A stretch of DNA of 64,000 nucleotides from Podarcis muralis (lineage: Eukaryota), in assembly GCF_964188315.1 (NCBI RefSeq), contig NC_135667.1, positions 26,598,001-26,662,000 on the forward strand. The letters run 5' to 3'. Each line of letters starts with the position of its first letter. Positions within the stretch are counted from its first letter, which is position 1. The notes under the pieces were generated by a model. That model saw nothing but the letters and a program-made list of their open reading frames with translations. It did no database searches and was not told the origin of the DNA. Position numbers and translations under genes: made by a program. This document shows, piece after piece, positions 1 to 24,665 of this stretch.

Positions 1-119
1 CGTCTGCACATGCGTGAGCGGCAAAATCCGGAAGTAATGCACTCCATTACTTCCAGCTCACCGCAGCACGCAACCTGAAAATACTCATCCCAAAGCTACT
101 TTAACCCGAGGTATGAAAG
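1..119. mobile_element. 3' part of a Tc1/mariner-type MITE cut by the window edge (duplicate of 17260-17517)
   Basis: Matches 17399-17517 and ends in degenerate TIR gaggtatgaaag followed by TA. Confidence 0.7.
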
Positions 120-284
120 TATTGACCACTTAGCTTTTGCTTAACGGTTGCCATCAATTTGATTTTAATTAATTTTTATAATGAAATATTTTTAGAATGT
201 TGGATTATTTGATTGTTTGATTATTTGATTGTTGTTAGCCGCCCTGAGCCCGGCTTCGGCTGGAGAGGGCGGGATATAAATAAA

Positions 285-343
<59 letters not shown>
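120..343 (+). mobile_element. LINE 3' tail (L2-like) ending in an (ATT)n microsatellite
   Basis: gttagccgccctgagcc...gggcgggatataaat followed by (att)n; duplicate at 17518-17729; family assignment from recall. Confidence 0.6.
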
Positions 344-1237
344 GCTGTGGTTTACTTAGGTGTTCTACTGAGTCACAACAGGAAAAAGCTTGGTGTAATC
401 TGTTGCCATGTGTTAAATGTGTTTACAGATGGCAGCTATGTGCTGCCACCTGGCAGTTTGAGTGTTGGGTCATGCTGCCACTACCACTACTGCATAGGGA
501 GATAAACCTGTCTCTTTTTGCTCTTTTACTTCTGTTTTTGTTTGCCTCATCGTGTTGTTTGTTGCTTTCTAATTCGTGATAATTCACGAATTAAGAACAA
601 CATCAACAACCTCAGATATTTTCCCACAGGAGATACTATGCAGAATATGCTGCTCTGTAACATTTAGCAGGGAATGGAGCAAGGGGTTATGTGTAGGCAG
701 CATGTTGGCATTATAATGCTGTTCTTATTTATCTTTGTTGTCTGCAGCTCTTGGGACACACAATTGAAAGTTGAGTTCTTTCTTGGCAAAACACTCAATT
801 GCATTAGCTCCTAAGGTGTGAGAATCACATGTGCCACCCCTGCTAAATAGCTAGATGGGCATCTCCTTCTTCACACCTGTGCTCCATCCCAGAAGTTGGA
901 ACAACGGCATGCCATGCCCACATCTACTCCAGCACATTTAAACCCCCTCTTCTGGCGTGGTGCATGCAAGAGACTGGCAATTTCACTTGTGTGCATTTCC
1001 AGCTGATCCTCTCAGCCCGACTCTCTCTGGCACTGTGTCATCCACCTCTTGCCCTACCTCCGCTTCTCCTATCTCTAACTGCACAGCCTCTACCTCTTTC
1101 CCCTGCTTTGCAAGTTGCACAGACCCCCACAAATCACTGGTCCCTTCCCCTGAAAAGTCTCCTGAGCCTCTGCCACCTCTGCCCACCCTTCAGACTCTTG
1201 CCTTTCCCTCCTGTCCAACAATGAAGATAAAGGTAAA

Positions 1238-1625
1238 GGGATGCAGGTGGTGCTGTGGTCTAAACCATGGAGCCTCTTGAGCTTGCCAATTGGAAGGTCA
1301 GCGGTTCGAAACTGTGTGACGGGGTAACCCCCCTTTGCTCTGTCCCAGCTCCTGCCAACTTAGCAGTTCGAAAGCATACCAGTGCAAGTAGATAAATAGG
1401 TACTGCTGTGGCGGGAAGGTAAACAGTGTTTCAATGCGCTCTGGCACTCGCCATGGTATCCCATTGTTCCAGAAGCAGTTTAGCCATGCTGGCCACATGA
1501 CCTGGAAAGCTGTCTGTGGACAAATGCTGGCTCCCTCGGCCTGAAAGTGAGATGAGCGCCGCAACTCTATAGTCACCTTTGACTGGACTTAACCATCATG
1601 GGGTCCTTGACCTTGACCTTTTACC
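1238..1625 (+). mobile_element. Sauria (Squam1-type) SINE
   Basis: gggatgcaggtggtgctgtgg head, gttcgaa B-box-like motif, gcaagtagataaataggtac core, (gacctt)n tail. Confidence 0.9.
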
Positions 1626-2210
1626 TCCAGCAATGACTCACCTGAATGGAGGTTATGTAAGCTTCTCCACTACACTGCACCATGTCATCTGCTACTGCTA
1701 TTAAGAGTAGCAGTAAAAAGAGTAGCAGTAAAACTTTAAAAGTATCCCTGAATGGTCAAAACTAATCCCAAATTAATTTCCAAAAGCCTATACAGAAAAC
1801 AGACAGCAAAACTAGGAGCCTGTGAAATTCATCAAGCAATATGCGTGTGTGTGTGAGCATGCACGCACACCCAAAGCAATAATGCAATATGATTACAAAT
1901 AAGGAGTATTAAGGTTCCAAGATACAACAAAGACACTAGTGGGTTTCTGTGTGAGATAATGAGGGAGTCCGGTGCGCTTCTGCTGCCACTCAGCTTGCCA
2001 GACTTGTTGCAGAGTAAAACACAGTGTGTGCTCTGTGTGCAAGCATGCAGAAAAGAGAGTCTGTACTCAGCTTCTTCACTAATCTAATGAAGCTTTATTT
2101 GTACAGCAGCGATAAATCAACATCTCCAGGAGACGGCATAATTCCTCCCTTCTCCGTCAAAACCGAAACTAGGCTGAACACAAAGAACAGATTTCAAGAT
2201 GAGGGAACCA

Positions 2211-2214
2211 CACA

Positions 2215-2245
<31 letters not shown>
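2211..2245. repeat. (CA)n microsatellite
   Basis: Direct reading; length differs in the paralogue at ~19597-19641. Confidence 0.95.
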
Positions 2246-2247
<2 letters not shown>

Positions 2248-2941
2248 CAGTGGGCTTCACGCATACCCTGTGCCGTTTAACCCTATAAGCTGGGATTCTC
2301 CTCACACTCTGCCCCTCCCTTTTGTTGTCCCTCAGAGGGGAAAGGGAGCAAGGAAGATAGACATAATTTGGTGTTTTGCTAATTAAAGGAGGGCCTGGGG
2401 TGATTAGGAAGAGGAAAGAGAAAGACTCCAGCAAAGAGTTCCATTCTGAAGAGCTTAAAACATCAAACAGTGCAAGAAGGGTAGAAAGAGAGAATGGAAA
2501 GGAGGAAGGGAAATCCAGTGCAGGGCAATGTGTTTCTGTGGTAGGGAGTTAAAGAAGCAAGGGGAAGGATGGAGAAATGTTGCTAGTTCTCTGCAGAATT
2601 CAGAGATTCTGGTATTGAAGGAATGGGTTGCCTCTAAAGTAAAAAAAACTGGACTTGGTGGGTGGTTTGTAGTTCATGTTCCCCAAAATGTTTGCAACTC
2701 TGTGAATCCAGAAAGTCCACTTTGCATGGGGCCATCTCCACTAACTCAAATTAGTCTGAGGACAATCACATTCAGTCAATGAAGGAAGTGTTCTGCTTGC
2801 GGAAATCTGCTGAATAGAGATTTATTAGGCCAATGTGGGCCCACATCTGCAAAGTCACACATACAATCAAGCTGAAAGCATAGTTATGACTTGCCATGGA
2901 CCTGGCACAATTCAGCAGAATCAACATAAATATATGTGTGA

Positions 2942-2942
2942 A

Positions 2943-3002
<60 letters not shown>

Positions 3003-3075
3003 TTATTTATACCCCGCCCTCCCCAGCCAAGGCCGGGCTCAGGGCGGCTAACAAGCAATAATAAAAACAAGTTGA
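2942..3075 (-). mobile_element. LINE 3' tail (L2-like) with (AAT)n microsatellite
   Basis: Reverse complement of the tail at 120-343; absent from the homologous flanks at ~9470 and ~28480; duplicate at ~20338-20460. Confidence 0.65.
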
Positions 3076-3300
3076 ATAACTAAAATGTTTCAACTCTGTT
3101 ATAGAGCATAAAAATGATAAGATCCATTGTTGAACCTATATAACAGTTTATGAATTGTTATAAATTAGCATGTGTGTTCTCCAATATCTGCGTCAGACAT
3201 GAAAATAGTGATTTCAAAATCATTAGATTTTATCTTTATTATAAATGATTTAAAATATTTTCAATTGTTTTACTATTTTTGCGCAGAAAGAGAAACGTAA

Positions 3301-4260
3301 TCAATGCTGTAGACGTTGCAAATTGGGGAAGAATAGGGTGAATAGATTTGCCGTCATCTTCCACAATGCCGATTTCAGTTGCCTATTCCGTATACTATAG
3401 ATTATTGGGTTCATAACTGGAGGAAACATGCAATAGAACATAGAAAGCACAAGATCCATGACTGATGGGGACCCAGAAGTTGGCTTTAGATAGGCAAATG
3501 AACCACTGGCAAGAAATAAGGATATTACAATAAGATGTGGCAAGCAAGTTGAGAAGGCTTTTTCCTTCCCCTGGGCAGAAGGAATTCTTAGAACTGCCCT
3601 GAAGATCTGAACATAAGAATAAACTATCAGAGCAAAGTATGTAAAACCCAGAGACGCACCAACACAAATAACCCAAAATGCGATGAGATATGAATCAGAA
3701 CAAGCAATTTTAAATAACTGTGGGATTTCACAGAATAACTGGTTGATTTCATTGGAACAGAACTCAAGTGTGAATGTGCTTCCAGTGTATATTGTAGAAT
3801 ACAGAAGCCCACCAACCCATGCACAGATTGCCAGTTGGACGCATGTCTTTCTATTCATGATAGTCTCATAGTGCAGTGGACAGCAGATGGCAATGTAGCG
3901 GTCATATGCCATAATACCAAGGATGAACAAGTGAGATCCAATAAAAAGAATGAGAAAGAAAACCTGGCAGATGCATCCACTGTATGAAATAGTCTTGGTG
4001 TTCATCAGGGAATTTGACAAGGATTTGGGGACTGTGACAGATATTGAGCCAATGTCTTGGAATGCAAGATTGGCCAAAAAGAAGTACATGGGTTTGTGAA
4101 GCTGAGGACTGCAAGAGATGACTGTGATGATGAGAAGGTTTTCAATGAGAGCCAACAAATAAATAAGCAGAAAAGCAATGAAACGGAATGTCTCCATCTC
4201 CTGAGTATCAGAGAATGCATGCAAAATGAATTCCATCAGTCCTGATGATTGGTTGAACAT
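3301..4260 (-). CDS. Olfactory receptor, OR14-like, gene A (319 aa from first ATG)
   Basis: LHKPMYFFLANL, MAYDRYIAIC, KAFSTCLPHL and PVMNPIIYSIRN motifs; the ORF-track TTG start at 4284 lies in the polypyrimidine tract of the acceptor tttgcag, first ATG is at 4260. Confidence 0.95.
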   Translation of the reverse strand: MFNQSSGLMEFILHAFSDTQEMETFRFIAFLLIYLLALIENLLIITVISCSPQLHKPMYFFLANLAFQDIGSISVTVPKSLSNSLMNTKTISYSGCICQVFFLILFIGSHLFILGIMAYDRYIAICCPLHYETIMNRKTCVQLAICAWVGGLLYSTIYTGSTFTLEFCSNEINQLFCEIPQLFKIACSDSYLIAFWVICVGASLGFTYFALIVYSYVQIFRAVLRIPSAQGKEKAFSTCLPHLIVISLFLASGSFAYLKPTSGSPSVMDLVLSMFYCMFPPVMNPIIYSIRNRQLKSALWKMTANLFTLFFPNLQRLQH

Positions 4261-5170
4261 TGTGTAGGTATTTGGTACCTGCAAAGAGAAAACAAACCCA
4301 TTTTAGAAAGGAGAAGAGTATCAGAGGCTTTCATGCAGGTTCCCCATGTGATCAAATAGATTGACCTAGGTAAGCCAGAAACCATTGCTCTTTCAATAAA
4401 CATTTGTTTGTTGTTCATCTTAAAATTAAAAAGTATACACCTTTAAAAATGTTAAATCTCTAAGTGGTTAGTATTACATATTATAAAAATATTTCATATT
4501 GTTCAATGTTTCGTATATATATATAATATATAATATATAATCTATATTATATAAAGAGTTTATATTGATATTGCATTATTGTACTTGATCATTGTGTTGC
4601 CTTGGATATTACTGATGACTGTTGGAAAGAAACAGAGGAACTGAGGTGAGAGGGAATAGAAGGCAGCTGCTGCTTCCCTGAGCAGAAACCCTCCACAAGC
4701 CATCTTGTTGCAGGACTTTACCTGCTGAATACAGTGCCAAAAACATTCAAACATTATTCTCAAGACATTTAACTGAATCAGATTGTTTGTCTCAGGCTTC
4801 AGTGAGCGTTTCCTGCAACAACCATTCAGTAGAGATGGTCTAAGTTAACCAGTCTAACACTACAAAAGTGGCAACTAATCATTCTGTTTCTGCCACTGGA
4901 GCATTGTTATACTTTGGTGCAGCTTCGAGTGCGGATGACATCTGAAATCATTCCTCCCAGTATAATGCAGTTAGAAAATTTGCAACTCCACTAAGTGTCT
5001 TAAGGGGTGGAGCTCTTGATATGGTATATTGACCTCTAAGAGTGGTGCATCAGTCCTGGCTGGGGTGCTGGTTTTGGGGGGAGAGAGGGTGCTTATGCTG
5101 AGTGGAAGCATGAAATTCTGACCTGAAAACCTGCTTGTTTAGTAGTACTGTCCTTTTCCACTGCCAGAAG

Positions 5171-5203
5171 TGTGTGTGTCTCTGTGTGTGTGTGTGTGTG
5201 TGT
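5171..5203. repeat. (GT)n microsatellite
   Basis: Direct reading; longer in the paralogue at ~22519-22571. Confidence 0.9.
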
Positions 5204-5350
5204 AAAGCAGGCATTAATTCTCATCATAATCCAAAAGACCACGATGATCCCCATCATTCAATGATGCCTTTTTCCATGTCACGGGTTTCCAGCATGCACC
5301 AGCAAAGAGAATCTGCAGCTGACACATTCTCTTCAGTGCCTCATGCAAAT

Positions 5351-6886
5351 CACTGGGCAACAATTTTTTACTTTTTGAATGTTGTTTAGATTTCTACAAC
5401 TGATTTAGGGTATTTTTGCACTGCTGAATCAGGAAGTGGCATCCGTTTCTCTCCATCAGGTCAGGTTTATTGTAAACGGAATGGTGGGCATTGATAAAGG
5501 TAAGTACACGTAAATTGCATGTTGCTTCACCATTTTTCAAACTTCAGGGCTTGAACTTCCGTTTCTTGGAACTCCTGGAATGCTCAGCGGCAGGGAGGTC
5601 TCTCTTCAGAGTCCAACAGTAGTCAGCCATCATGACTGCGTCCCAGCGTCCCAGCGACCCTGATACCTGGTCTCCATCTCTTTCATGTCCTGATGGAATC
5701 TCTCCCCCTGCTCGTCACTCATTGAACCCAGGTTCTCAGGAAACCGGTCCATATGTGAAAATAGGTAGTGCATCTTGACGCTCATGTTGCAGCCCAGGTT
5801 TCTGAAAGCAGTCAGCATGTTGTTGACAAGTTCTGCGTAGTTTCTGGCCTTATTGTTGCCAAGAAAGTTATTCACTACCAGAACAAATGCCTTCCACGCT
5901 TCCAGTTCCACTTCGTTCATTGAGTTTCCGAACTCTGGATCTCTGATGAGCTGACGGATCTGAAGACCGTCAAAGATGCCACTTTCAACTTCTCCATGGT
6001 CAATCCTGGAAAAGCCTGGCACAAGTAAGTGAAGCAGTCACCATCCTTGTCCAGAGCCTTGGTGAACTGCTTGATTAAGCCGAGCTTGATGTGCAGCAGT
6101 GGGAAGAGTATTCTGTCTCTGTCCACCAGAGGGTCGTTGATGATGTTCCTTTTTTTGCAAGGCACCAATTCCTCCCGCACAGGCCAGTCCTTATTTGTGT
6201 AATGCTGAGCACGGTCCCTACTATCCCACATGCACAGAAAACATGGGTACTTGGTGAAGCCAGACTGTTGTCCCAACAAAAAGTTCACCATCTTCAGGTC
6301 AACACAAATAAACCACTTATGCTGATCATAACCAATTTTCTCCAGCACATACTTCACCTCTTCATAGTTCTCCTTCAGTGTACTCGAGTAAGCCAGGGGT
6401 ATAGAGGCAATCTGGTTGCTGTTGTGTAGCAGAACACATTTCAGTGATCGCTTGCTGCTGTCAATGAACAGTCTCCAATCTTTGGGTTCGTACTGTGGCA
6501 CTCCAAGCTTGAGCAGAAGCTGCGCAATATCTGCACAGTACACCAAGTCCTTCTCTTCCGAGAAAAAAAGGAGGTTTTATGACTTCAAACTGATCCCTTG
6601 TCGACATAATCACCCAGAACTATCAGACCTGAATACTTCTTGTCATTAAAATAATCATTTCCAATCAAAACAATTATTCAACATGGCATTTTACCCCCAC
6701 CAACTTCTTCTAAAATGCTCCACGCAAGTGTACATGTGAACAAAAACATAAAAAAACCGACATGTGGCCATAGCTCAAAAACATGACCTGATTGAGCAAA
6801 ACCAATGTGATCTTTGGATTCAGCGCATCAGATTCGTCCTAAAAAAACTGAAAAAACACAGACAACAAATTTGTTGTTGACCAGTG
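5351..6886 (-). mobile_element. Internally deleted Chapaev3/CMC-type DNA transposon with frameshifted transposase
   Basis: TIRs cactgggcaacaa / ttgttgaccagtg; overlapping ORFs 5917-6546 (WRLFIDSSKRSLK, LGQQSGFTKYPCFLC, LHIKLG) and 5630-6022 (KMHYLFSH, SDEQGERFHQD); family name from recall. Confidence 0.75.
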
Positions 6887-7050
6887 ATTGAAAATGTTAA
6901 AACAGATATTGGTAACATGTTAACTTCTCAGCACACCTGAACCTTAAAGTTTTGTCCAGAATTGCCCTCAGTATAATTAATTTGTGATAAATTGGTTTTT
7001 TATCAAGTTGATACTCAATAAGCCACTTGAGAAGTGATCCATAAAAACTG

Positions 7051-7068
7051 ACTCACCAAACTATTCAT
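7051..7068 (-). promoter_or_regulatory. Putative splice donor of the upstream exon of OR A (exon ends 7057, TTG|GTGAGT), with in-frame ATG at 7068
   Basis: Block gatctgccc-atg-aat-agt-ttg|gtgagt is homologous in all four OR14-like genes. Confidence 0.7.
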
Positions 7069-7303
7069 GGGCAGATCCTGTATAATTTAATACAATTTTA
7101 TGTGGTGGTATTTGTTGTTGTTGTTGTTGCTGCTGCTGCTTTATGTCTGCTCATTTTCTGCTTTTCTCTGATCACCCAGTATGATCTGTCACATCTTTAG
7201 CTCTCCATCACTGTTTAAGAGGTGATCTCCTTTACAGTTTTCCTCACTGACTAACAGAATAAGGAGATGTAGTAATTACTTTTATTTATATTTTGTTTCT
7301 CCA

Positions 7304-7327
7304 TTCCCAGGAGTCTAATAAACTCAG
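7304..7327. promoter_or_regulatory. O/E(EBF)-like site plus adjacent TAAT homeodomain core, putative OR A promoter
   Basis: ttcccaggagtctaataaactcag, conserved at 11941, 24666 and 31764. Confidence 0.6.
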
Positions 7328-7908
7328 AAGAAAATTCTCAGGTGTATGTGTGGAATGCATGTGTATTTTACTGTTTACATGTAAAAGTGTTCTATTAGAA
7401 TACCAAATGATAAAAGTTTCAAGCAAGAATCACTACGTCACATGGGATTTCACCTGATATACGTAGATTGAGTAGCAATATATGGAGGTACATACATCAC
7501 TTGGTTTCTTTTTCATTCATTTATAAATATTTCCATTATAACACTAAGATGCTTTAAAAATATTTCCTATAATATAATACTTAATATAATTAATATAATA
7601 TCTATCTATCATGTTCCAAGTTCTTTATTATTTTTTCTTAAAAATTGTAATAACATAATGAGGGTCAGTGTAACATTTGCTCCCAGCCTGTAATTCCCTT
7701 TTACAACTTTGAGAAACTTGTCTCCTGCTACTGCTATAAATCAGGGGGGCCCTTGTTCAGGAGAGAAGGAAGATAAACAACTGCCAAAGTACTTAGCCAG
7801 CTGGTTTCTGCCTGGCATGAAACATACAAACATTTGCAAATATATCTTTAAGGTCATTTTAAAATACAGGCCTTGATCAGATGCCTCAGTTCTAAATATA
7901 GTCGTACC

Positions 7909-8121
7909 TCGGTAGTCGAACAGAATCCATTCTGGAAGTCCGTTTGACTTCCAAAACTTTTGGAAACCAAGGCGCAGCTTCCGATTGCCTGCAGTAAGCT
8001 CCTGTAGCCAATCGAAAGTTGCGGAAGCCACGCCAGACATTCGGGTTCCACAGAACATTCACAAATGGGAACATTCATTTCCGGGTTGACTCCAAGGCAT
8101 TTGGGATCCAAGGTACAAATG
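7909..8121. mobile_element. Tc1/mariner-type MITE
   Basis: (c)agtcgtacct...aggtacaaatg termini with TA flanks; paralogue at 27338-27586. Confidence 0.7.
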
Positions 8122-8599
8122 TATCTGAGAAATCCGCTCACCTTTTTTTCTGGTGAGTGCTGTTGTGTCCAGGTATCGGGGGCCCTGCAGTGTTCTGGTG
8201 GAGGGGAGATTGACGACTCTCTTGTTGCTGTCTGGGCCACATCACTGGTGCTGGGCGGAACCCACCTAGGGGTGGCCCCGCTGTCCAATCAGGACCTGGG
8301 GGAGGCATGGCCGTGGGTAATTAAGACCACAGAGCATCTGGGGGGCCCTGTTCTCTTACCCTTCACCAGATCTCCCAATCCACCTGCCCTCTTTTTTATG
8401 CTTTGCTATGACTCAAAGCAAAAACTGGATTTGGTGGGTGGTTTGTAGCTCATGTTTCCCAGAATGTTTGCATTCTGTGAATACAGAAAGTCCACTTTCC
8501 ATGGTGCCATCTCCCCTAACTTACATGAGTCTGAGGACAATCACATTCTGTCAATCAAGGAAGTGTTCTGCTTGCAGAAATCTGCTGAATAGAGATTTA

Positions 8600-8992
8600 C
8601 CATATTGGCCCAAATATAAGGCGCACCCACAAATAAGCCACACCTTTCACATTCAATGGAGGGGAGTAAAAAAACAATACCCGAATAGAAGCCGCTCCCT
8701 TAAAATTCCGCAGGCACTCACAGCCGTAAATGGCAGATGTAGAAGAAAACCCTACTGGTACTAGAAAGGACCCACAAGTGAAAGCGATGAATGACATTAG
8801 AATTAATTCCACAACAGTCTCAAGCTCGCAAATCGGCAATAAAACATTTTTTTTGTTCTCTTTTACCATATGTCTGTTTCAGCAGCAATATCATAAAAGC
8901 CAATTTTTGTAAGGTTGCAAATTGAACCGCACTTTAACCTTTCACGGTCAGAATTTGGGGGGAAAGTGCAGCTTATATTCAGGCCAATACGG
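8600..8992. mobile_element. pogo/Tigger-type MITE
   Basis: TIRs ccatattggcccaaatataag / cttatattcaggccaatacgg with TA flanks; empty site gagatt-TA-ttaggcc at ~2818-2831. Confidence 0.75.
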
Positions 8993-8996
8993 TATT

Positions 8997-9355
8997 AAAA
9001 GGTAAAGGTACCCCTGCCCGTACGGGCCAGTCTTGCCAGACTCTAGGGTTGTGCGCTCATCTCACTCTATAGGCCGGGAGCCAGCGCTGTCCGCAGACAC
9101 TTCCGGGTCACGTGGCCAGCGTGACAAGCTGCATCTGGCGAGCCAGCGCAGCACACGGAACGCCGTTTACCTTCCCGCTGGTAAGCGGTCCCTATTTTAT
9201 CTACTTGCACCCGAAGGTGCTTTCGAACTGCTAGGTTGGCAGGCGCTGGGACCGAAAGACGGGAGCGCACCCCGCCGCGGGGATTCGAACCACCGACCTT
9301 TCGATCGGCAAGTCCTAGGCGCTGAGGCTTTGACCCACAGCGCCACCCGTGTCCC
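8997..9355 (-). mobile_element. Young Sauria SINE with 13-bp TSD
   Basis: Full length with CpGs intact; TSD ccaatacggtatt at 8984-8996 and 9357-9369; empty site at ~28372-28384. Confidence 0.95.
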
Positions 9356-9611
9356 ACCAATACGGTATTAGGCCAATACAATCACACATACAATCAAGCT
9401 GAAAGCATAGTTCTAACTTGCCATGGACCTGGCACAATTCAGCAGAATCAACATAAAAATATGTGTGAAAATAAGTACAAAACAAGTAAATTAACTAAAA
9501 AAAAATCCACTCTGCAACAGAGCATGAAAATAGTAAGAGCTATTGCTGAACCTATATAACAGTTTATTACTCTAATGGAGCACAGAAATTAAAGATCAAT
9601 CTCTGAATCTA

Positions 9612-10115
9612 TTAGACAGCATCTAAAAAAGCAGGGACATCACCTTCCCAACGAAGGTCCATATAGTTAAAGCTATGGTGTTCCCAGTAGTGATGTATGG
9701 AAGTGAGAGCTGGACCATAAAGAAGGCTGATCACCAAAGAATTGATGCTTTTGAATTATGGTGCTGGAGGAGACTCTTGAGAGTCCCATGGACTGCAAAA
9801 AGACCAAACCTATCCATTCTTAAGGAAATCAGCCCTGAGTGCTCACTGGAAGGACAGATCCTGAACCTGAGACTCCAATACTTTGGCCACCTCATGAGAA
9901 GAGAAGACTCCCTGGAAAAGACCTTGATGTTGGGAAAGATGGAGGGCACAAGGAGAAGGGGATGACAGAGGATGAGATGGTTGGATAGTGTTCTTGAAGC
10001 TACCAGCATGAGTTTGACGAAACTGCGGGAGGCAGTGGAAGACAGGAGTGCCTGGTGTGCTCTGGTCCATGGGGTCACGAAGAGACGGACACAACTAAGC
10101 AACTAAACAACAACA
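9612..10115 (+). mobile_element. BovB/RTE LINE, 5'-truncated 3' fragment
   Basis: MVFPVVMYGSESWTIKK...ELWCWRRLLR RT C-terminus and (caa)n tail. Confidence 0.95.
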
Positions 10116-10200
10116 TTTACTATTAATTAGCAAGTGTGTTCTCAAAAGATTTGCAACTGAAATGAAAATAAAGATTTCAACACAGGTTTTATCTCTATGT

Positions 10201-10436
10201 TTAAAAATGTTTTACTATATTTTTACAGGAAGAGAAACATATTGCAAATTGGGGAAGATAAATTGGGGTGAAAAATTTTGCAGTCAACTTCCACAATGCT
10301 GATTGCAGTTGCCTATTCCGAATACTACAGATTATTGGGTTTATAACTGGAGGCAACATGCAGTAGAACATAGAAGCCACAAGATCCATGGCTGATAGGG
10401 ACCCAGAAGTTGGCTTTAGATGAACCACTGGCAAAA
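10201..10436 (-). pseudogene. Truncated OR14-like 3' fragment (paralogue of gene C)
   Basis: Only TM7 and C-terminus remain (DLVASMFYCMLPPVINP); 8-bp deletion relative to 29742-29751; breaks off just before a MITE. Confidence 0.9.
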
Positions 10437-10442
10437 AGGATA

Positions 10443-10684
10443 CAGTGGTACCTCGGGTTAAGTACTTAATTCATTCCGGAGGTCCATACTTAACCTGAAA
10501 CTGTTCTTAATCTGAAGCACCACTTTAGCTATTGGGCCCTCCTGCTGCTGACGCGCCGCCGGAGCACGATTTCTGTTCTCATCCTGAAGCAAAGTTCTTA
10601 ACCCGAGGTAATATTTCTGGGTTAGTGGAGTCTGTAACCTGAATCGTATGTAACCTGAAGCGTATGTAACCCGAGGTACCACTG
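10443..10684. mobile_element. Tc1/mariner-type MITE (~242 bp family)
   Basis: TIR cagtggtacctcggg / cccgaggtaccactg with TA TSD; four copies in the window. Confidence 0.9.
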
Positions 10685-10914
10685 TATTGGATATTTGTTA
10701 TGTGGAAAGAAAATCAATAAAAACTATTTTTTTAAAAAAATTCTTTTATTGATTACTCTACACAGGTGATCAATAGCTGTTTCCCACCCTACAAAAGGTT
10801 ATGAGTCCAGATGGTAATAGAACACAGAATATGGGATATCTGAAAAATTTTCAAACTTGTTGAAGTGATTTTTCAAGCAGAGGTGGACAGGAATATGCTT
10901 CCTTCCTAGTAGAC

Positions 10915-11035
10915 AAAAAGCCGTTGCAGCCTTGAATAATATTAGCTTTTTTTGCTGCTGCTGCATAAAACTGTTGACTCATGTCATAGGAGCTAACTCT
11001 AGGGGCTGAAGTCCTGTCACACAAACACCCCAATA
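10915..11035 (-). mobile_element. CR1 LINE ORF2 fragment
   Basis: Reverse complement atgagtcaacag..tgcagcagcaaaaaaagctaat resembles CR1 RT (MSQQ..AAAKKAN). Confidence 0.7.
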
Positions 11036-11570
11036 AAATATGTGATCCCGTAGAAGAAGGGCAGATGAAGATGATGGAGTTTATGGAGCTGGCTGATCTC
11101 ACCGGGAGAATCCGCGACCAGAAAGAAGAGGAACACCAAGAAGACGGGAAGAAATTCAAAGACTATTTGAATAAATATTGTAATATTAAAGATATGTAAC
11201 GACTTGAAAGAATTAATTAGGCCTAGGACTAAATTAGGATTAAGTAATTAAATAAGAAAAAGTATGATAAGAAAAGTTAGGAAATATGATTATGACTGTG
11301 ATATGGTTTTATGAAATGATATTGAAAACTGCTATATATAATTACTAAGAAACTCAGATGGAAGAGATTAGAGGAAGTCAAGTAATATGTTGATGAAGAT
11401 GGATTTTAATTAATTAATTAAGTTTTAATTTATGTGGTGATTGGATGTATTTTATGTTTTATATTCTTTCTTCTTCTTTTCTTTTCTTTTCATTTTATTT
11501 CCCCCCCTCTTATTATTGTTTATTCTCTCTTTTGTTATGTTTTTGTATGAAAATAAGAAATATTATTGTG
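11036..11570 (+). mobile_element. L1/Tx1-like LINE 3' end
   Basis: MEFMELADLTGRIRDQKEE...KKFKDYL-type ORF2 end followed by a T-rich 3' UTR. Confidence 0.55.
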
Positions 11571-11940
11571 GGGGGGGATATGTGAGCCCCAAAAATTAAT
11601 GGGCACTGCCATTCAAAAGGTGTGTGCATGTTGTATCATGTGATTGATGTGGGGTGGGGCTTACGTGCCTTGCCCCCACAATACCTTATTCAAGTTGGAA
11701 CCCCTGACTCATGTGGAGTGAAGGAAATAAATATGGGTAAAATTAACTGGAGTATCTCTTTTTTTACTTCTGCCAATACAGAGAACAGTAAGAGAGAGAA
11801 GGATGTGATCCACAGAGAAAATGGCAAATCACACTGGTTGGCCAGAAATGACCTTTTATCAGTTGGTACTCCATGGAATGTTTCTATATGTAAACAGTGA
11901 AATACACATATATACCACAAATACCTGTGAGTGTATCCTT

Positions 11941-11964
11941 CTGAGTTTGATTAGACTCCTGGGA
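11941..11964. promoter_or_regulatory. Homeodomain core plus O/E-like site, putative OR D promoter
   Basis: ctgagtttgattagactcctggga is the reverse complement of the motif at 7304, 24666 and 31764. Confidence 0.6.
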
Positions 11965-12104
11965 GTGGTGGAAATAAATATTCATTGCAGCTTCTCCTTT
12001 ACATTTCTGCCAGTACAGAGAACAGCATCACCTCTCAAACGGCTGTGGAGAGAGAAGGATGTGATACATTGAAAGGGCAAATCACATCGGCTGCCCAGGA
12101 AAAA

Positions 12105-12182
12105 ATGCCACAGATCTTAATCAGGTATGAAAATGAAGCAGATAAAATTACCCAAGATCTGCCCCTGAACAGCATGGTAAGT
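12105..12182 (+). promoter_or_regulatory. Putative upstream exon end and splice donor of OR D (ATG|GTAAGT, intron 12177-14584)
   Basis: Strong donor; open frame MPQILIRYENEADKITQDLPLNSM would join the OR frame after splicing. Confidence 0.65.
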
Positions 12183-13003
12183 CAATTGCATGGGATACTT
12201 TTCCATTATTGGTGACCTACATAATAGAAATAAAGTTTTATCACAAGTTATTTATGGATTCTCTAGTCCAGAGTCTGCAAAGGTTAGGTGTGCAGAAGAG
12301 TCACCATGTCACCAAGAATGATACAATTTCATTCAATAAAGAGAATATTCTTGCCTGCACATAGAAGAGAACAGGCCAGAGTAAGTCCCTCTTTGGTTAT
12401 GGATGTTGGAAACATGGCATGGACAAAGACGGTTAAAGTTGACAGACGGGGTTACTTGGATTATGTTGGAAATTGATGTCTGCTTTGTATTCTTTCTATT
12501 CAGGTTTGGGAAGGCATGATTCTAGGCTTCCTGTTAGCAGAATGAGCAGAAGCACACATGCACACACTGGAAGAAGAAAATGGGGCACCTATCCCATGAA
12601 GTCCCACTTTGCTTGTGCATCTCAGAAACCTGATTTGGACAAAGATTGATGATCATTGGGGTTACTTGGATCATTTTGAGAACTGATGCCTGCTTTTCAT
12701 TCTTGCCTCTGGGAGTGAAAGGACCAGTGGTGGATTCGTATCAGGTCTGGGGGTAAGAATTTCAGACCTCCACTTAGATTAAGCAATAGCAAGACATTCA
12801 TACACCAAAAAAACTGGGACAGTACTGCTCTTGAAGATAAATAAAGTCAATGGTCCCCTAGTTTCTCTTCAAGCCTCTCAGATATTTCTCCTGGAAGGTA
12901 GATTGCAGGTTCATTTTCTGAAGTTCAATTTAGTGAAATTTTGGCGGCAGCTTTGAATTTCAAGGTGCTATAAATAGTATGTTAAGCCCTTTACAGCTTA
13001 GAA

Positions 13004-14014
13004 CTTGGATAGGAAAACTAAGGCCCAGGGGCTGGATCCGGCACAGTTGCCTTCTAAATCTGGCCTGCAGCTGGTCCGGGAATCAGTGTGTTTTTACATG
13101 AGTAGAATGTGTCCTTTAATTTAAAATGTACCTCTGGGTTATTTGTGGGGCCTGCCTGGTGTTTTTACATGAGTAGAATGTGTGCTTTTATTTTAAATGC
13201 ATCTCTAGGTTATTTGTGGGGCATTCGTTCTTTTTTTCTTTTTTTCAAAATATGGTCTAGGTCAGTGTTTCCCAACCGGTGTTCCGCGGCACACGAGTGT
13301 GCCGTGAGACGTTGCCTCGTGTGCCGCGAGATGCCTGGAGGGAGGCGGGCGAGTCGGGCGGCGAGAGGCGGGGCGGCGGCGGCGAGGAGAGGCCGCGCCT
13401 CCTGCTGTTGCCTGGCGCTCCTCCTCGCAGCCAGAAGCGCTGCCTGGGCGCCTCCGCGCGACTCTGCCTCGCTGGGTTTGGTCTCCCAGCAGAGACGGGT
13501 CACACGCGCCCCTCCCTCCCTCCCTCAGCCTGCGCGGAGGGAAAGCCAGAGAGAGGCATCGCTCCTGCGCGGCGGGAGAGGGAGCAGCCGGAGCGATGCC
13601 CCAAACGAACGCATGGGACCGGAGGGGAAATCCTCTCCGAGGCGGATTGAGCGCAGCTGAGAGAAGCCTTTCGAGGAGCTGCCGTGTCCCCTGGAAACCC
13701 CCTTCCCAGCTCTGCCTCAGCCGCCGCCGCCTCAGTTGCCGCCGTCCCTCAGTCCCTCGCTCTGCTGCCTCCTCCCACCCCCAAAGCTTGGAGGTTCCCC
13801 AGCAAGGGGGAGGGAAAAAACTTTCACTTTTGTGCGTCCCTCCCGGCGTGACGCTGCGCGCTGACGTCACGGGGCGGGGCTTTAATGGTGGTGTGCCGCG
13901 AGATTTTTTTTTTAGTAAACAGGTGTGCCGTTGCCCAAAAACATTTGGGAAACACTGGTCTAGGTCTGAGGGACAGTGGACTGGCCCCCTGTTGAAAAAG
14001 TTTGCTGACCCCTG
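13004..14014. mobile_element. hAT non-autonomous element (outer), split by a nested hAT MITE
   Basis: Ends aaaaagtttgctgacccctg; degenerate 8-bp flanks gcttagaa / gtttagag. Confidence 0.7.
13263..13957. mobile_element. GC/CpG-rich hAT MITE (inner)
   Basis: 13-bp TIR cagtgtttcccaa / ttgggaaacactg and perfect 8-bp TSD gtctaggt at 13255-13262 and 13958-13965. Confidence 0.92.
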
Positions 14015-14602
14015 GTTTAGAGCTTGTTTATTTGTTTACCAATACATGCCCACTCAACTATTTCAGTATGCAGAATTGGCCGTGTTACAGGTGACACATA
14101 ATATTCAATCTACACTTACAAAAACTGACTTTTACTGTGGTAGCCCCTACAGTTCTTTATTACATTAAGTTTCTATGTCCAAGAATCACTGGGCAGTTAT
14201 TAATTCCCTGCCTAATGACATAATTCTGGACAAGAGCCCTCAGTGGACTATTTTAAATGGCTTTTAAAACCATTTTATTTCAATGAAATATGCCTAGACT
14301 TGCTGTTTTAATGTTATATTTTGTAGATAAAAAAAGTTATTTTTGATGATTTTATCAGTGTTCCTTGAAAAAAGTATTTCACTATATTTCATACTGACTG
14401 CTTTACTATTTTGCAATTTAATGCCATTTAATTTTCTTTAAAACTAAAAAACCCCCGAACAATTGTTTATTAAACAATCAATTGTTTATTGCTTACTTAA
14501 GTCAATCCACACGATCATATTGGGGAACATGCATCAAAGCATTCTCCGCCTCCTTTCTAAAATAGCTTTGTCTTCTCCTTGCAGGTACCACACACTCACA
14601 CA

Positions 14603-15565
14603 ATGTTCAACCAGTCTTCAGGATTGGAGGAATTCATTCTGCATGGATTCTCTGATACTCAGGGATCAGAGATATATCAGTTCATTATATTTTTGATCAT
14701 ATATCTGATCGCTGTCACTGAAAACCTCATCATCATCACAGTCATCTCTTACAGTGCTCAGCTTCACAAACCCATGTACTTCTTTCTAGCCAATCTGGCA
14801 TTCCAAGACTTTGGCTCCATATCTGTCACAGTCCCCAAATCCATGGCAAATGCCCTGATGAACAGCAAGACCATTTCTTACAATGGATGCATCTGTCAGG
14901 TTTTCTTCTTTGTCCTTTTCTCTGGATCTCATTTTTACCTCCTTGGAATTATGGCATATGACCGCTACATTGCCATCTGCTGCCCGCTGCACTATGAGAC
15001 TGTCATGAATAGAAAGGCATGTATCCAAATGGCAATCGGTGCATGGATTGCTGGCCTTCTGTATTCTGCATCATACGCTGTTAGTACATTCACAATAGAG
15101 TTTTGTTCCAACAACATCAATCAGTTCTTCTGTGAAATTCCACAGTTAATCAAAATTGCTTGCTCTGAATCATATCTCATTGTATTTTGGAATACTTGTG
15201 TTATTGCTTCTCTGTCCTCCATTTATATTGTTCTAATAGTGTATTCTTATGTTCAGATCTTCAGGGCAGTTCTAAGAATTCCTTCTGCCCAGGGAAAGGA
15301 AAAAGCCTTCTCAACTTGCTTGCCACACCTTGTTGTAATATCATTATATTTTCTCATTGGTACATTAGCATATTTAAAGCCAATTTCTAAGTCTCTATCA
15401 TCAATAGATCTTGTACTTTCAGTGTTTTATTGCATGTTGCCACCAGTCATGAATCCCCTAATCTATAGCATTAGGAATAGGGAACTGAAATTGGCATTAT
15501 GGAAGCTTATTTCCAACGTTTTTGCTCATTTTTTCCCACAATCATCAATGCTTTTAAGGAAATAA
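14603..15565 (+). CDS. Olfactory receptor, OR14-like, gene D (320 aa from ATG)
   Basis: All OR motifs intact; acceptor tcttctccttgcag ends at 14584; the only + strand intact OR. Confidence 0.95.
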   Translation: MFNQSSGLEEFILHGFSDTQGSEIYQFIIFLIIYLIAVTENLIIITVISYSAQLHKPMYFFLANLAFQDFGSISVTVPKSMANALMNSKTISYNGCICQVFFFVLFSGSHFYLLGIMAYDRYIAICCPLHYETVMNRKACIQMAIGAWIAGLLYSASYAVSTFTIEFCSNNINQFFCEIPQLIKIACSESYLIVFWNTCVIASLSSIYIVLIVYSYVQIFRAVLRIPSAQGKEKAFSTCLPHLVVISLYFLIGTLAYLKPISKSLSSIDLVLSVFYCMLPPVMNPLIYSIRNRELKLALWKLISNVFAHFFPQSSMLLRK

Positions 15566-17259: not shown

Positions 17260-17517
17260 CAGTGGTACCTCTGGATGCAAACAGGATCAGTTCCGGAGCC
17301 CCGTTCGCATCCTGAAGTGAACGCAATGCGTCCATGCATCTGCGCATGCGTGGGTCACGATCTGCTGCTTCTACGCATGCGTGTGATGTCATTTTGACCG
17401 TCTGCACATGCGTGAGCGGCAAAATCCGGAAGTAATGCACTCCATTACTTCCAGCTCACCGCAGCACGCAACCTGAAAATACTCATCCCAAAGCTACTTT
17501 AACCCGAGGTATGAAAG
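17260..17517. mobile_element. Tc1/mariner-type MITE
   Basis: TA-cagtggtacctc...gaggtatgaaag-TA. Confidence 0.75.
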
Positions 17518-17682
17518 TATTGACCACTTAGCTTTTGCTTAACGGTTGCCATCAATTTGATTTTAATTAATTTTTATAATGAAATATTTTTAGAATGTTG
17601 GATTATTTGATTGTTTGATTATTTGATTGTTGTTAGCCGCCCTGAGCCCGGCTTCGGCTGGAGAGGGCGGGATATAAATAAA

Positions 17683-17729
<47 letters not shown>

Positions 17730-18623
17730 GCTGTGGTTTACTTAGGTGTTCTACTGAGTCACAACAGGAAAAAGCTTGGTGTAATCTGTTGCCATGTGTT
17801 AAATGTGTTTACAGATGGCAGCTATGTGCTGCCACCTGGCAGTTTGAGTGTTGGGTCATGCTGCCACTACCACTACTGCATAGGGAGATAAACCTGTCTC
17901 TTTTTGCTCTTTTACTTCTGTTTTTGTTTGCCTCATCGTGTTGTTTGTTGCTTTCTAATTCGTGATAATTCACGAATTAAGAACAACATCAACAACCTCA
18001 GATATTTTCCCACAGGAGATACTATGCAGAATATGCTGCTCTGTAACATTTAGCAGGGAATGGAGCAAGGGGTTATGTGTAGGCAGCATGTTGGCATTAT
18101 AATGCTGTTCTTATTTATCTTTGTTGTCTGCAGCTCTTGGGACACACAATTGAAAGTTGAGTTCTTTCTTGGCAAAACACTCAATTGCATTAGCTCCTAA
18201 GGTGTGAGAATCACATGTGCCACCCCTGCTAAATAGCTAGATGGGCATCTCCTTCTTCACACCTGTGCTCCATCCCAGAAGTTGGAACAACGGCATGCCA
18301 TGCCCACATCTACTCCAGCACATTTAAACCCCCTCTTCTGGCGTGGTGCATGCAAGAGACTGGCAATTTCACTTGTGTGCATTTCCAGCTGATCCTCTCA
18401 GCCCGACTCTCTCTGGCACTGTGTCATCCACCTCTTGCCCTACCTCCGCTTCTCCTATCTCTAACTGCACAGCCTCTACCTCTTTCCCCTGCTTTGCAAG
18501 TTGCACAGACCCCCACAAATCACTGGTCCCTTCCCCTGAAAAGTCTCCTGAGCCTCTGCCACCTCTGCCCACCCTTCAGACTCTTGCCTTTCCCTCCTGT
18601 CCAACAATGAAGATAAAGGTAAA

Positions 18624-19011
18624 GGGATGCAGGTGGTGCTGTGGTCTAAACCATGGAGCCTCTTGAGCTTGCCAATTGGAAGGTCAGCGGTTCGAAACTG
18701 TGTGACGGGGTAACCCCCCTTTGCTCTGTCCCAGCTCCTGCCAACTTAGCAGTTCGAAAGCATACCAGTGCAAGTAGATAAATAGGTACTGCTGTGGCGG
18801 GAAGGTAAACAGTGTTTCAATGCGCTCTGGCACTCGCCATGGTATCCCATTGTTCCAGAAGCAGTTTAGCCATGCTGGCCACATGACCTGGAAAGCTGTC
18901 TGTGGACAAATGCTGGCTCCCTCGGCCTGAAAGTGAGATGAGCGCCGCAACTCTATAGTCACCTTTGACTGGACTTAACCATCATGGGGTCCTTGACCTT
19001 GACCTTTTACC
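18624..19011 (+). mobile_element. Sauria SINE (duplicate of 1238-1625)
   Basis: No difference seen from 1238-1625. Confidence 0.9.
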
Positions 19012-19600
19012 TCCAGCAATGACTCACCTGAATGGAGGTTATGTAAGCTTCTCCACTACACTGCACCATGTCATCTGCTACTGCTATTAAGAGTAGCAGT
19101 AAAAAGAGTAGCAGTAAAACTTTAAAAGTATCCCTGAATGGTCAAAACTAATCCCAAATTAATTTCCAAAAGCCTATACAGAAAACAGACAGCAAAACTA
19201 GGAGCCTGTGAAATTCATCAAGCAATATGCGTGTGTGTGTGAGCATGCACGCACACCCAAAGCAATAATGCAATATGATTACAAATAAGGAGTATTAAGG
19301 TTCCAAGATACAACAAAGACACTAGTGGGTTTCTGTGTGAGATAATGAGGGAGTCCGGTGCGCTTCTGCTGCCACTCAGCTTGCCAGACTTGTTGCAGAG
19401 TAAAACACAGTGTGTGCTCTGTGTGCAAGCATGCAGAAAAGAGAGTCTGTACTCAGCTTCTTCACTAATCTAATGAAGCTTTATTTGTACAGCAGCGATA
19501 AATCAACATCTCCAGGAGACGGCATAATTCCTCCCTTCTCCGTCAAAACCGAAACTAGGCTGAACACAAAGAACAGATTTCAAGATGAGGGAACCACACA

Positions 19601-19642
<42 letters not shown>

Positions 19643-20336
19643 AGTGGGCTTCACGCATACCCTGTGCCGTTTAACCCTATAAGCTGGGATTCTCCTCACA
19701 CTCTGCCCCTCCCTTTTGTTGTCCCTCAGACGGGAAAGGGAGCAAGGAAGATAGACATAATTTGGTGTTTTGCTAATTAAAGGAGGGCCTGGGGTGATTA
19801 GGAAGAGGAAAGAGAAAGACTCCAGCAAAGAGTTCCATTCTGAAGAGCTTAAAACATCAAACAGTGCAAGAAGGGTAGAAAGAGAGAATGGAAAGGAGGA
19901 AGGGAAATCCAGTGCAGGGCAATGTGTTTCTGTGGTAGGGAGTTAAAGAAGCAAGGGGAAGGATGGAGAAATGTTGCTAGTTCTCTGCAGAATTCAGAGA
20001 TTCTGGTATTGAAGGAATGGGTTGCCTCTAAAGTAAAAAAAACTGGACTTGGTGGGTGGTTTGTAGTTCATGTTCCCCAAAATGTTTGCAACTCTGTGAA
20101 TCCAGAAAGTCCACTTTGCATGGGGCCATCTCCACTAACTCAAATTAGTCTGAGGACAATCACATTCAGTCAATGAAGGAAGTGTTCTGCTTGCGGAAAT
20201 CTGCTGAATAGAGATTTATTAGGCCAATGTGGGCCCACATCTGCAAAGTCACACATACAATCAAGCTGAAAGCATAGTTATGACTTGCCATGGACCTGGC
20301 ACAATTCAGCAGAATCAACATAAATATATGTGTGAA

Positions 20337-20387
<51 letters not shown>

Positions 20388-20685
20388 TTATTTATACCCC
20401 GCCCTCCCCAGCCAAGGCCGGGCTCAGGGCGGCTAACAAGCAATAATAAAAACAAGTTGAATAACTAAAATGTTTCAACTCTGTTATAGAGCATAAAAAT
20501 GATAAGATCCATTGTTGAACCTATATAACAGTTTATGAATTGTTATAAATTAGCATGTGTGTTCTCCAATATCTGCGTCAGACATGAAAATAGTGATTTC
20601 AAAATCATTAGATTTTATCTTTATTATAAATGATTTAAAATATTTTCAATTGTTTTACTATTTTTGCGCAGAAAGAGAAACGTAA

Positions 20686-21645
20686 TCAATGCTGTAGACG
20701 TTGCAAATTGGGGAAGAATAGGGTGAATAGATTTGCCGTCATCTTCCACAATGCTGATTTCAGTTGCCTATTCCGTATACTATAGATTATTGGGTTCATA
20801 ACTGGAGGAAACATGCAATAGAACATAGAAAGCACAAGATCCATGACTGATGGGGACCCAGAAGTTGGCTTTAGATAGGCAAATGAACCACTGGCAAGAA
20901 ATAAGGATATTACAATAAGATGTGGCAAGCAAGTTGAGAAGGCTTTTTCCTTCCCCTGGGCAGAAGGAATTCTTAGAACTGCCCTGAAGATCTGAACATA
21001 AGAATAAACTATCAGAGCAACATAAGTAATGGCTAGAAATATACCAACACAAATAACCCGAAATGTGATGATATATGAATCAGAACAAGCAATTTTAAAT
21101 AACTGTGGGATTTCACAGAAGAACTGGTTGATTTCATTGGAACAGAACTCAAGTGTGAATGTGCTTCCAGTGTATATTGTAGAATACAGAAGCCCACCAA
21201 CCCATGCACAGATTGCCAGTTGGACGCATGTCTTTCTATTCATGATAGTCTCATAGTGCAGTGGACAGCAGATGGCAATGTAGCGGTCATATGCCATAAT
21301 ACCAAGGATGAACAAGTGAGATCCAATAAAAAGAATGAGAAAGAAAACCTGGCAGATGCATCCACTGTATGAAATAGTCTTGGTGTTCATCAGGGAATTT
21401 GACAAGGATTTGGGGACTGTGACAGATATTGAGCCAATGTCTTGGAATGCAAGATTGGCCAAAAAAAAGTACATGGGTTTGTGAAGCTGAGGACTGCAAG
21501 AGATGACTGTGATGATGAGAAGGTTTTCAATGAGAGCCAACAAATAAATAAGCAGAAAAGCAATGAAACGGAATGTCTCCATCTCCTGAGTATCAGAGAA
21601 TCCATGCAAAATGAATTCCATCAGTCCTGATGATTGGTTGAACAT
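20686..21645 (-). CDS. Olfactory receptor, OR14-like, gene B (319 aa), near-identical to A except TM5
   Basis: Intact OR motifs; acceptor AG at 21664-21665. Confidence 0.95.
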   Translation of the reverse strand: MFNQSSGLMEFILHGFSDTQEMETFRFIAFLLIYLLALIENLLIITVISCSPQLHKPMYFFLANLAFQDIGSISVTVPKSLSNSLMNTKTISYSGCICQVFFLILFIGSHLFILGIMAYDRYIAICCPLHYETIMNRKTCVQLAICAWVGGLLYSTIYTGSTFTLEFCSNEINQFFCEIPQLFKIACSDSYIITFRVICVGIFLAITYVALIVYSYVQIFRAVLRIPSAQGKEKAFSTCLPHLIVISLFLASGSFAYLKPTSGSPSVMDLVLSMFYCMFPPVMNPIIYSIRNRQLKSALWKMTANLFTLFFPNLQRLQH

Positions 21646-22525: not shown

Positions 22526-22574
<49 letters not shown>

Positions 22575-22718
22575 GCAGGCATTAATTCTCATCATAATCC
22601 AAAAGACCACGATGATCCCCATCATTCAATGATGCCTTTTCCCATGTCACGGGTTTCCAGCATGCACCAGCAAAGAGAATCTGCAGCTGACACATTCTCT
22701 TCAGTGCCTCATGCAAAT

Positions 22719-24248: not shown

Positions 24249-24412
24249 ATTGAAAATGTTAAACCAGATATTGGTAACATGTTAACTTCTCAGCACACCT
24301 GAACCTTAAAGTTTTGTCCAGAATTGCCCTCAGTGTAATTAACTTGTGATAAATTGGTTTTTTATCAAGTTGATACTCAATAAGCCACTTGAGAAGTGAT
24401 CCATAAAAACTG

Positions 24413-24430
24413 ACTCACCAAACTATTCAT
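24413..24430 (-). promoter_or_regulatory. Putative splice donor of the upstream exon of OR B (exon ends 24419), in-frame ATG at 24430
   Basis: Same block as 7051-7068. Confidence 0.7.
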
Positions 24431-24665
24431 GGGCAGATCCTGGATAATTTAATACAATTTTATGTGGTGGTATTTGTTGTTGTTGTTGTTGCTGCTGCTG
24501 CTTTATGTCTGCTCATTTTCTGCTTTTCTCTGATCACCCAGTATGATCTGTCACATCTTTAGCTCTCCATCACTGTTTAAGAGGTGATCTCGGTTACAGT
24601 TTTCCTCACTGACTAACAGAATAAGGAGATGCAGCAATTACTTTTATTTATATTTTGTTTCTCCA

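Follow-up and report, generated by a model that had tools for sequence, protein, structure and literature searches.

Mosaic olfactory receptor (OR) genes are known to arise by gene conversion within the OR clusters of mammals (Sharon et al. 1999, Genomics 61:24, as cited in PMC1995454). Hotspots of interlocus gene conversion have been described in human segmental duplications, where they include the OR2T genes, RHD/RHCE and HLA (PMC4467073), and concerted evolution has been suspected in the avian and reptilian gamma-c (OR14-like) clade (PMC2758906). We analysed a stretch of 64 kb of the lizard Podarcis muralis (64,000 nucleotides (nt) of contig NC_135667.1, hereafter the window), which is a tandem array of intact, OR14A16-like olfactory receptor genes. 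In this array, sequence of the fifth transmembrane helix (TM5) of a diverged paralogue, gene C, was probably transferred into gene A by a recent, short, non-crossover interlocus (ectopic) gene conversion.

This locus resembles the mammalian mosaic genes, as they are summarized in the citing article, in that a short coding segment was transferred non-reciprocally between clustered paralogues and a putative odorant-binding segment was altered. It differs from the cases as summarized there in being a squamate OR14A16-like array, in having its donor, recipient and boundaries (to 22-110 nt) placed with two outgroups, and in that a private letter of the tract in A was seen in one independent sequencing run and not in three others. 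With the human duplications it shares the clustered variants that match a paralogue within near-identical duplicons and the short-tract non-crossovers (PMC4467073), but the lizard donor is an 87%-identical paralogue rather than B, the twin of A, and the conversion adds diversity instead of homogenising. The gamma-c work concerned the same OR family and suspected the same mechanism, conversion within species-specific expansions; homogenisation was deduced there from tree shape only, whereas here one mapped tract diversifies recent duplicates (PMC2758906). Mosaic ORs made by conversion are already known, so the present case is a well resolved one and its mechanism is not new; we found no published report of OR gene conversion in Podarcis. 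What it adds is diversifying rather than homogenising conversion documented at base resolution in a reptilian OR14 expansion.

The genes and segments on which the comparison is built are the following. Positions in TM5 were numbered by anchoring the SY motif at 5x57-5x58 through an alignment with consOR4, that is by sequence alignment only.

3301-4284, minus strand: main coding exon of gene A, the putative recipient; an intact open reading frame (ORF), OR14A16-like, its sequence being that of XP_077774411.
20686-21669, minus strand: gene B, the tandem twin of A, its sequence being that of XP_077774413.
29524-30537, minus strand: gene C, the putative donor paralogue, 87% identical to A overall and 26.25 kb from it.
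3636-3687, minus strand: the 52-nt tract in A, covering TM5 positions 5x34 to 5x51 and holding 14 of the 18 differences between A and B.
3590-3699, minus strand: the maximal conversion block, bounded by sites 3589 and 3700, with a single A-C difference.
29843-29952, minus strand: the donor block in C, with the counterpart of the 52-nt tract at 29889-29940; the tract is identical in the C orthologue of Podarcis raffonei.

The coding exons of A and B do not differ in length; of their 984 nt, 18 differ between the two genes, 14 of them within the tract (sites 3636, 3637, 3640, 3645-3647, 3649, 3653, 3655-3657, 3675, 3681 and 3687). The two receptors differ at 10 residues: eight are in TM5, where the tract peptide is LIAFWVICVGASLGFTYF in A and IITFRVICVGIFLAITYV in B, and two are elsewhere, an Ala/Gly difference near the N-terminus and a Leu/Phe difference just before TM5. 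When 18 differences were placed at random in 200,000 trials, the maximum in any 52-nt window was 9, and the analytic bound for at least 14 of 18 differences in 52 nt is ~3e-12, so that the clustering is not a matter of chance.

Comparison of the tract with its counterpart in C showed that A is identical to C at 51 of the 52 nt, the single mismatch being at site 3647, while B differs from C at 13. Over the whole 110-nt block the figures were again one difference between A and C (109 of 110 nt match) and 13 between B and C. At the sites that border this block the letters in A, B and C are T, T and G (site 3589) and A, A and G (site 3700), respectively; A agrees there with B and not with C, so that the tract is at most 110 nt long and of the non-crossover kind. 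With an A-C divergence of 14.6% elsewhere, the probability of finding at most one mismatch in 110 nt is 5e-7. In a permutation test on the order of the polymorphic sites, which was our own implementation in GENECONV style, the A-C fragment at columns 586-684 of the exon alignment was matched in 0 of 5000 permutations (283 polymorphic sites; P = 0.0014 with no mismatch allowed).

An earlier note on this DNA had described A and B as near-identical apart from 14 differences and eight residue changes at 3636-3687, had found A to match the divergent gene C over these 52 nt with one mismatch, and had held the tract to about 110 bp by diagnostic flanking sites; the exon alignment gave the same counts and the same two peptides, located the mismatch and identified the bordering sites. 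Its suggestion that a short conversion tract made a chimeric receptor is borne out by the permutation result, which isolates the A-C fragment, and by silent matches between A and C, which are given below.

The polarity of the differences was read from two outgroups: gene E, a further copy in P. muralis, and the A/B-type orthologue of P. raffonei, which is single-copy. Clustering of proteins at 90% identity puts A and B together with E and with proteins of the older P. muralis assembly. The segments and sites concerned are listed here.

L001:15436-16419, minus strand in window orientation: gene E, the third P. muralis A/B-type copy (XP_077774409).
L003:19436-20419, minus strand: the A/B-type orthologue of P. 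raffonei, intact, single and situated between C and a gene of another type, D.
3636-3657, minus strand: the minimal C-derived segment, columns 628-649, with eight sites changed from the state of B, E and P. raffonei to the state of C.
3647, minus strand: the A-private site, column 638, which gives Gly (GGT) at 5x47; all nine other sequences have Ala.
21021-21072, minus strand: the B version of the tract, with derived sites at 21072, 21066, 21060, 21038 and 21022 (columns 598, 604, 610, 632 and 648, respectively).

The P. raffonei orthologue is 96.9% identical to A and 97.4% identical to B. Homology of E and of the P. raffonei copy to A and B is confined to the stretch from ~186 nt upstream of the exon through ~800 nt downstream of it, and the alignment of these flanks gives the unrooted grouping (A,B) versus (E, P. 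raffonei). The intact 984-nt ORF at L003:19436-20419 lies inside a called gene whose 400-residue product is without a Pfam match, which looks like an oddity of the annotation.

At columns 628-630, 636, 639, 640, 645 and 649, B, E and the P. raffonei copy share one state while A, C and the P. raffonei orthologue of C share the other. These eight sites give the changes Ile>Ala (5x44), Ile>Phe (5x48) and Val>Phe (5x51). Four of them are silent: columns 636, 639 and 645 are so entirely, and column 630 is the third position of the Ala codon, which is also C-like. A sliding window showed an A-C distance as low as 1-2 per 60 nt at the tract only, while the B-C, E-C and P. raffonei pairs gave 8-12. 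The P. raffonei orthologue of C has the same nucleotide sequence as C across the tract, with zero differences over columns 578-804, and the C orthologues of Lacerta agilis and Zootoca vivipara have essentially the same helix as C at the protein level. Since the helix of C is kept in its orthologues, and since B, E and the P. raffonei copy agree against A at eight sites, the C-type helix is native to the C lineage and the transfer one-way, with C as the donor and A as the recipient. The direction, which the earlier note had left unresolved, thus runs from C to A. The reverse, a transfer from A with C as the recipient, was considered separately and was ruled out by the C-type helix of the P. raffonei, Lacerta and Zootoca orthologues.

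The remaining differences in the tract are of another kind. On the B-type side there are four replacements, Leu/Val>Ile, Ala>Thr, Trp>Arg and Ser>Phe, and a silent substitution at column 648, five changes in all. At columns 604, 610, 632 and 648, A agrees with E, with the P. raffonei copy and with C, and B is alone among these; in the D-type copies the letters at 604, 610 and 632 are those of A, and the letter at the silent column 648 is that of B. B is also alone at column 598, yet E and the P. raffonei copy differ, which makes the polarity ambiguous by a strict outgroup rule. Four of the five B-type states were therefore seen in no other copy examined, and the letter of column 648 occurs in the D-type copies. 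The outgroups settle the polarity of the eight sites and are not decisive for the five B-type sites. On this evidence, the 14 differences between A and B are a composite of eight C-derived sites and one A-private site on the side of A and five sites of B type. Of the 52-nt swap spoken of in the earlier note, the clustering of the differences is real; the event was a one-way copy instead, and only eight of the 14 differences are demonstrably C-derived.

The sequence of A was then compared with sequencing runs independent of the assembly, which were matched on 3301-4284 at 85% likeness, so that C-type and D-type contigs were matched too. The raw-read depth was ~1.3x, and the contigs show presence, not absence. 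One run from a different study, X1, has two contigs that belong to A. The first, of 108 nt, is identical to A over 3592-3699, including the private letter at 3647. The second, of 241 nt, is identical to A over 3670-3910, including the private letter at 3736, and has, besides the A/B-type letters at 3690 and 3699, letters other than those of B at 3675, 3681 and 3687. Between the two contigs there is an overlap of 30 nt, which fits neighbouring nodes in a 31-mer graph that branches at 3700, where C differs. Because the first contig is unbranched, sequence that enters from the A flank must run through the whole C-type tract. The A haplotype is real in an independent individual and is not an assembly chimera, which is what the earlier note had named as grounds for giving up the conversion.

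Among the matches listed for X14, X5 and two raw reads of X24, only a non-A letter was found at 3647. The cleanest X24 read has five other differences from A, and these matches could thus stem from C as easily as from an allele of A. From the non-A letter in these three runs, neither the Gly variant nor the conversion can be called polymorphic or fixed.

Conversion from C into A is the probable explanation of these results, and within it we give a slight preference, somewhat better than even, to a single event that spanned 52 nt or more, in which case the five B-type changes would be older than the duplication of A and B and would have been erased in A. Such a conversion accounts for 13 of the 14 differences between A and B. 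The tract would have a minimum length of 22 nt (3636-3657) and a maximum of 110 nt (3590-3699); its exact length, as well as the timing of the five B-type changes, is what we infer within these limits. Five changes in 52 nt on the branch of B, which otherwise has ~3 changes in 4248 nt, have a Poisson probability of 5e-10, while the same changes, if they arose earlier, have a probability of 1e-6 to 3e-4. The difference between these values favours their erasure in A by the conversion.

Several observations weigh against this explanation. Whatever their timing, the clustering of the five B-type changes has no explanation, and the sole mismatch between A and C in the block, 3647, sits inside the tract. 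At sites 3601, 3682, 3690 and 3699 (columns 684, 603, 595 and 586, respectively) both A and B are C-like while E and the P. raffonei copy differ, so that the common ancestor of A and B may have undergone an earlier conversion. The phasing in X1 comes from the overlap in a de Bruijn graph at a branch shared with C and not from a single read, no long-read run was among the runs listed, and the copy number of A and B is that of the assembly.

Among the alternatives, one that we regard as unlikely, although it fares best, is that the C-derived tract is only 22-40 nt long and that the five B-type changes arose after the duplication, by a burst of point mutation (for example through error-prone repair), by strong selection on the helix, or by a second micro-conversion from an unannotated donor. 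A, E, the P. raffonei copy and C have none of the five changes, the D-type copies have only the silent one, and two of the five are CpG transitions (columns 604 and 648). In addition, a protein of the older assembly carries LIAFRVICVGIFLAITYV, in which the Arg and the Phe are present and the Ile and the Thr are absent, so that the B-type changes look stepwise and polymorphic, and the D lineage shows a comparable donorless cluster, these 52 nt holding 6 of its 20 changes. The low probability of five changes in 52 nt on the short branch of B (5e-10) stands against a late origin, and a donor for a second micro-conversion into B was found neither in the window nor among the annotated proteins. No donor of the B tract exists in the window at three mismatches or fewer, and region-limited searches of 5.8 billion clustered proteins for a donor of the B or D helix gave nothing closer than the clusters of A and C, unannotated pseudogenes being unsearched.

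The proteins of the older assembly have peculiarities of their own. P0124, the protein with the Arg and the Phe, starts with a TM3-TM4 piece of gene C spliced onto an A/B-type exon; it is a chimeric model and weak evidence, its genomic locus is not on record and its protein sequence alone was used. P0123, another chimeric model, has its N-terminus from another OR subfamily, one which is seen at 43716-44717.

Two successive conversions would explain the four C-like sites that A and B share outside the minimal segment, and we consider this course of events improbable. C would first have converted the ancestor of A and B over 3590-3699 and, after the duplication, E would have converted B back over columns 628-649; A would then have kept the outcome of the first conversion. 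In favour of this, A and B carry the letters of C at columns 586, 595, 603 and 684, unlike E and the P. raffonei copy, which are joined at 603 by the D-type copies, and B does not differ from E at any of the eight sites of columns 628-649. Two events are needed, however, where one conversion and one point change are enough; the D-type copies agree with A, B and C at 586, 595 and 684, which is explained most simply by changes derived in E and P. raffonei; and B differs from E at columns 632 and 648, inside the putative back-conversion.

An assembly artefact, either a chimera of consensus or polishing or two haplotypes misplaced in tandem as A and B, is very unlikely. Near-identical tandem copies are hard to assemble, the older assembly yielded just one annotated protein of A/B type, and the absence of a long-read run among those listed has been mentioned. 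Against these points stand the X1 contigs, which come from a different study and are identical to A including the letters at 3647 and 3736, and the nature of the patch itself, since 22-110 nt from a gene 26 kb away would be an atypical assembly error; were A and B alleles of one locus, a patch of C type in one of them would still have come from another locus by conversion. Finally, although TM5 changes fast in this array, a separate gain of C-like residues in A by substitutions under selection with no transfer has a negligible probability and is ruled out by the four silent positions that also match C (630, 636, 639 and 645), which protein-level convergence does not explain, and it would further call for eight changes in 22 nt on a branch with almost no other change.

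Under the preferred explanation, a conversion of at least 52 nt from C into A, the A/B lineage would already have had its own diverged helix, which B retains. After the duplication of A and B, a break, a nick or a heteroduplex in A inside 3590-3699 would have been repaired from C. Before the conversion, A, whether E-like or B-like, had runs of 42 and 46 bases identical to C on the two sides of 3636-3657, and nowhere did the two genes match better than in this block. If the damage was mended by synthesis-dependent strand annealing with C as the template, and by short-patch mismatch correction, a non-crossover patch would have been left, with at least 22 nt overwritten (3636-3657), most likely all 52, and a ceiling of 110 nt. 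The residues replaced would be those at 5x44, 5x48 and 5x51 and, if the tract was long, those at 5x34, 5x36, 5x38 and 5x45 too, while the Gly of A at 5x47 may be a later point change or a letter of the donor allele. The intervening gene B, which is nearer to C than A is, was unaffected by the conversion.

In TM5, A and B differ at positions 5x34, 5x36, 5x38, 5x44, 5x45, 5x47, 5x48 and 5x51, while Val 5x39 and Gly 5x43 are unchanged; the Gly at 5x43 is common to A, B, C and Olfr412. In this class II receptor, residues 5x39 and 5x47 touch the odorant and a small residue at 5x43 makes room, residues 5x40, 5x44 and 5x48 touch longer ligands at the TM5-TM6 interface, and residue 5x51 packs on Y6x48 of the FYGx motif (PMC13025043). 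In OR1A1, F206 at position 5x47 is essential (bioRxiv 10.1101/2023.11.16.567230). The converted residues are at or next to known contact positions, which makes a change in the odorant tuning of A plausible. The likeness to Olfr412 is that the changes between A and B hit the ligand contacts 5x44, 5x47 and 5x48, as well as 5x51; the difference is that the lizard receptors are mapped by alignment only and are known from sequence alone. With changes that would map to these four positions, the description of the tract in the earlier note as part of a ligand-pocket helix is reasonable. Donor, recipient and ancestral forms coexist in one genome (C, A, and B with E), beside a single-copy orthologue in the sister species. 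This makes the locus an unusually clean natural experiment on the roles of 5x44, 5x47, 5x48 and 5x51 in class II odorant tuning, and on whether a micro-conversion gives a new specificity in one step.

Other genes of the array have changed in the same part of TM5. The features concerned here and in the description of the duplicon are as follows.

14579-15565, plus strand: gene D, a further OR14 paralogue, with its own cluster of TM5 changes in window positions 15183-15219.
1-7658, no strand assigned: the A duplicon, which matches the B duplicon at 17399-25023 with 97.85% BLAST identity including gaps.

In the lineage of D and its copy D', 6 of 20 private changes fall in the same 52 nt (P = 1.6e-4; 15183-15219, columns 605-641), among them the TM5 changes Ala>Val, Ala>Ile, Ala>Ser and Phe>Ser; no annotated protein fits as a donor of this cluster. 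Gene C is itself uneven when it is compared with its P. raffonei orthologue (L002:13749-14762): of the 50 differences, 44 are concentrated in columns 225-577 and the last 430 columns hold just four, which places a mosaic breakpoint at columns 577-584, adjoining the left edge of the tract. Five residues of C in columns 225-577 have the A/B-type state, while the orthologues of P. raffonei, Lacerta and Zootoca agree together, which hints at a transfer of the reverse kind, with A/B-type sequence entering C.

Besides the conversion from C into A, donorless bursts in the same 52 nt, mostly amino-acid-changing, were thus seen in two independent lineages, the A/B type (five changes) and the D type (6 of 20). 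That TM5 is a recurrent, localised hot spot of diversification in the lizard OR14 array is a doubtful proposition, though one that would cover these bursts and the mosaic breakpoint next to the tract. Under it, a hot spot of recombination or repair at the start of TM5 would, by templated and error-prone repair, produce cassette-like variants of the pocket, and selection might let such variants persist as polymorphisms.

Two further proposals were examined and rejected. Positive selection on the TM5 bursts, as measured by the ratio of nonsynonymous to synonymous substitution rates (dN/dS), was set aside with counts that are too small (~9 amino-acid-changing to 2 silent). Columns 650-720 were considered as a wider homogenisation and rejected, as they are equally conserved between all paralogue types in both species, which is a sign of constraint.

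The assignment of these genes follows from several comparisons. Gene A has 97% identity to OR14A16-like proteins of P. muralis, all of its close matches are named OR14A16-like and carry Pfam 7tm_4 and 7tm_1, and its comparison with the sequence of the solved consOR4 structure gave E = 1.9e-77. The translations show the OR signature motifs MAYDRY, KAFSTC and NP..Y, and by these marks together the genes are class II olfactory receptors of the OR14, gamma-c-like family. The annotated proteins of A, B and E start with MNSL followed by VPNTYT (for A, window 4260-4284 and upstream), so the start codon lies in an upstream exon that is spliced to the main exon.

Mismatches are distributed unevenly along the 7.6-kb duplicon shared by A and B: positions 1-3369 have only 2, the exon has 4 when the tract is left aside, and the rate rises to ~1.6% in 4320-7630. 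This steep gradient of divergence suggests a recent long-tract homogenisation, or an unequal crossover, over the gene and its 3' flank.

The order of the genes in P. muralis, in window orientation, is D2(+) E(-) D'(+) A(-) D(+) B(-) C(-), while the array of P. raffonei comprises just one gene each of the C, A/B and D types. The P. muralis array consists of three units of a D-type and an A-type gene (D2-E, D'-A and D-B), followed by C, where P. raffonei has one unit. The D' unit (P. muralis locus L001, upstream of the window) is 99.6% identical to window positions 7658-14993. Comparison of 9613-10421 with 28936-29744 showed a match of 95.9%, which reaches the 3' end of gene C (29524-29744); given this match, ~10201-10421 would be a truncated remnant of a C-like gene beside the A unit.

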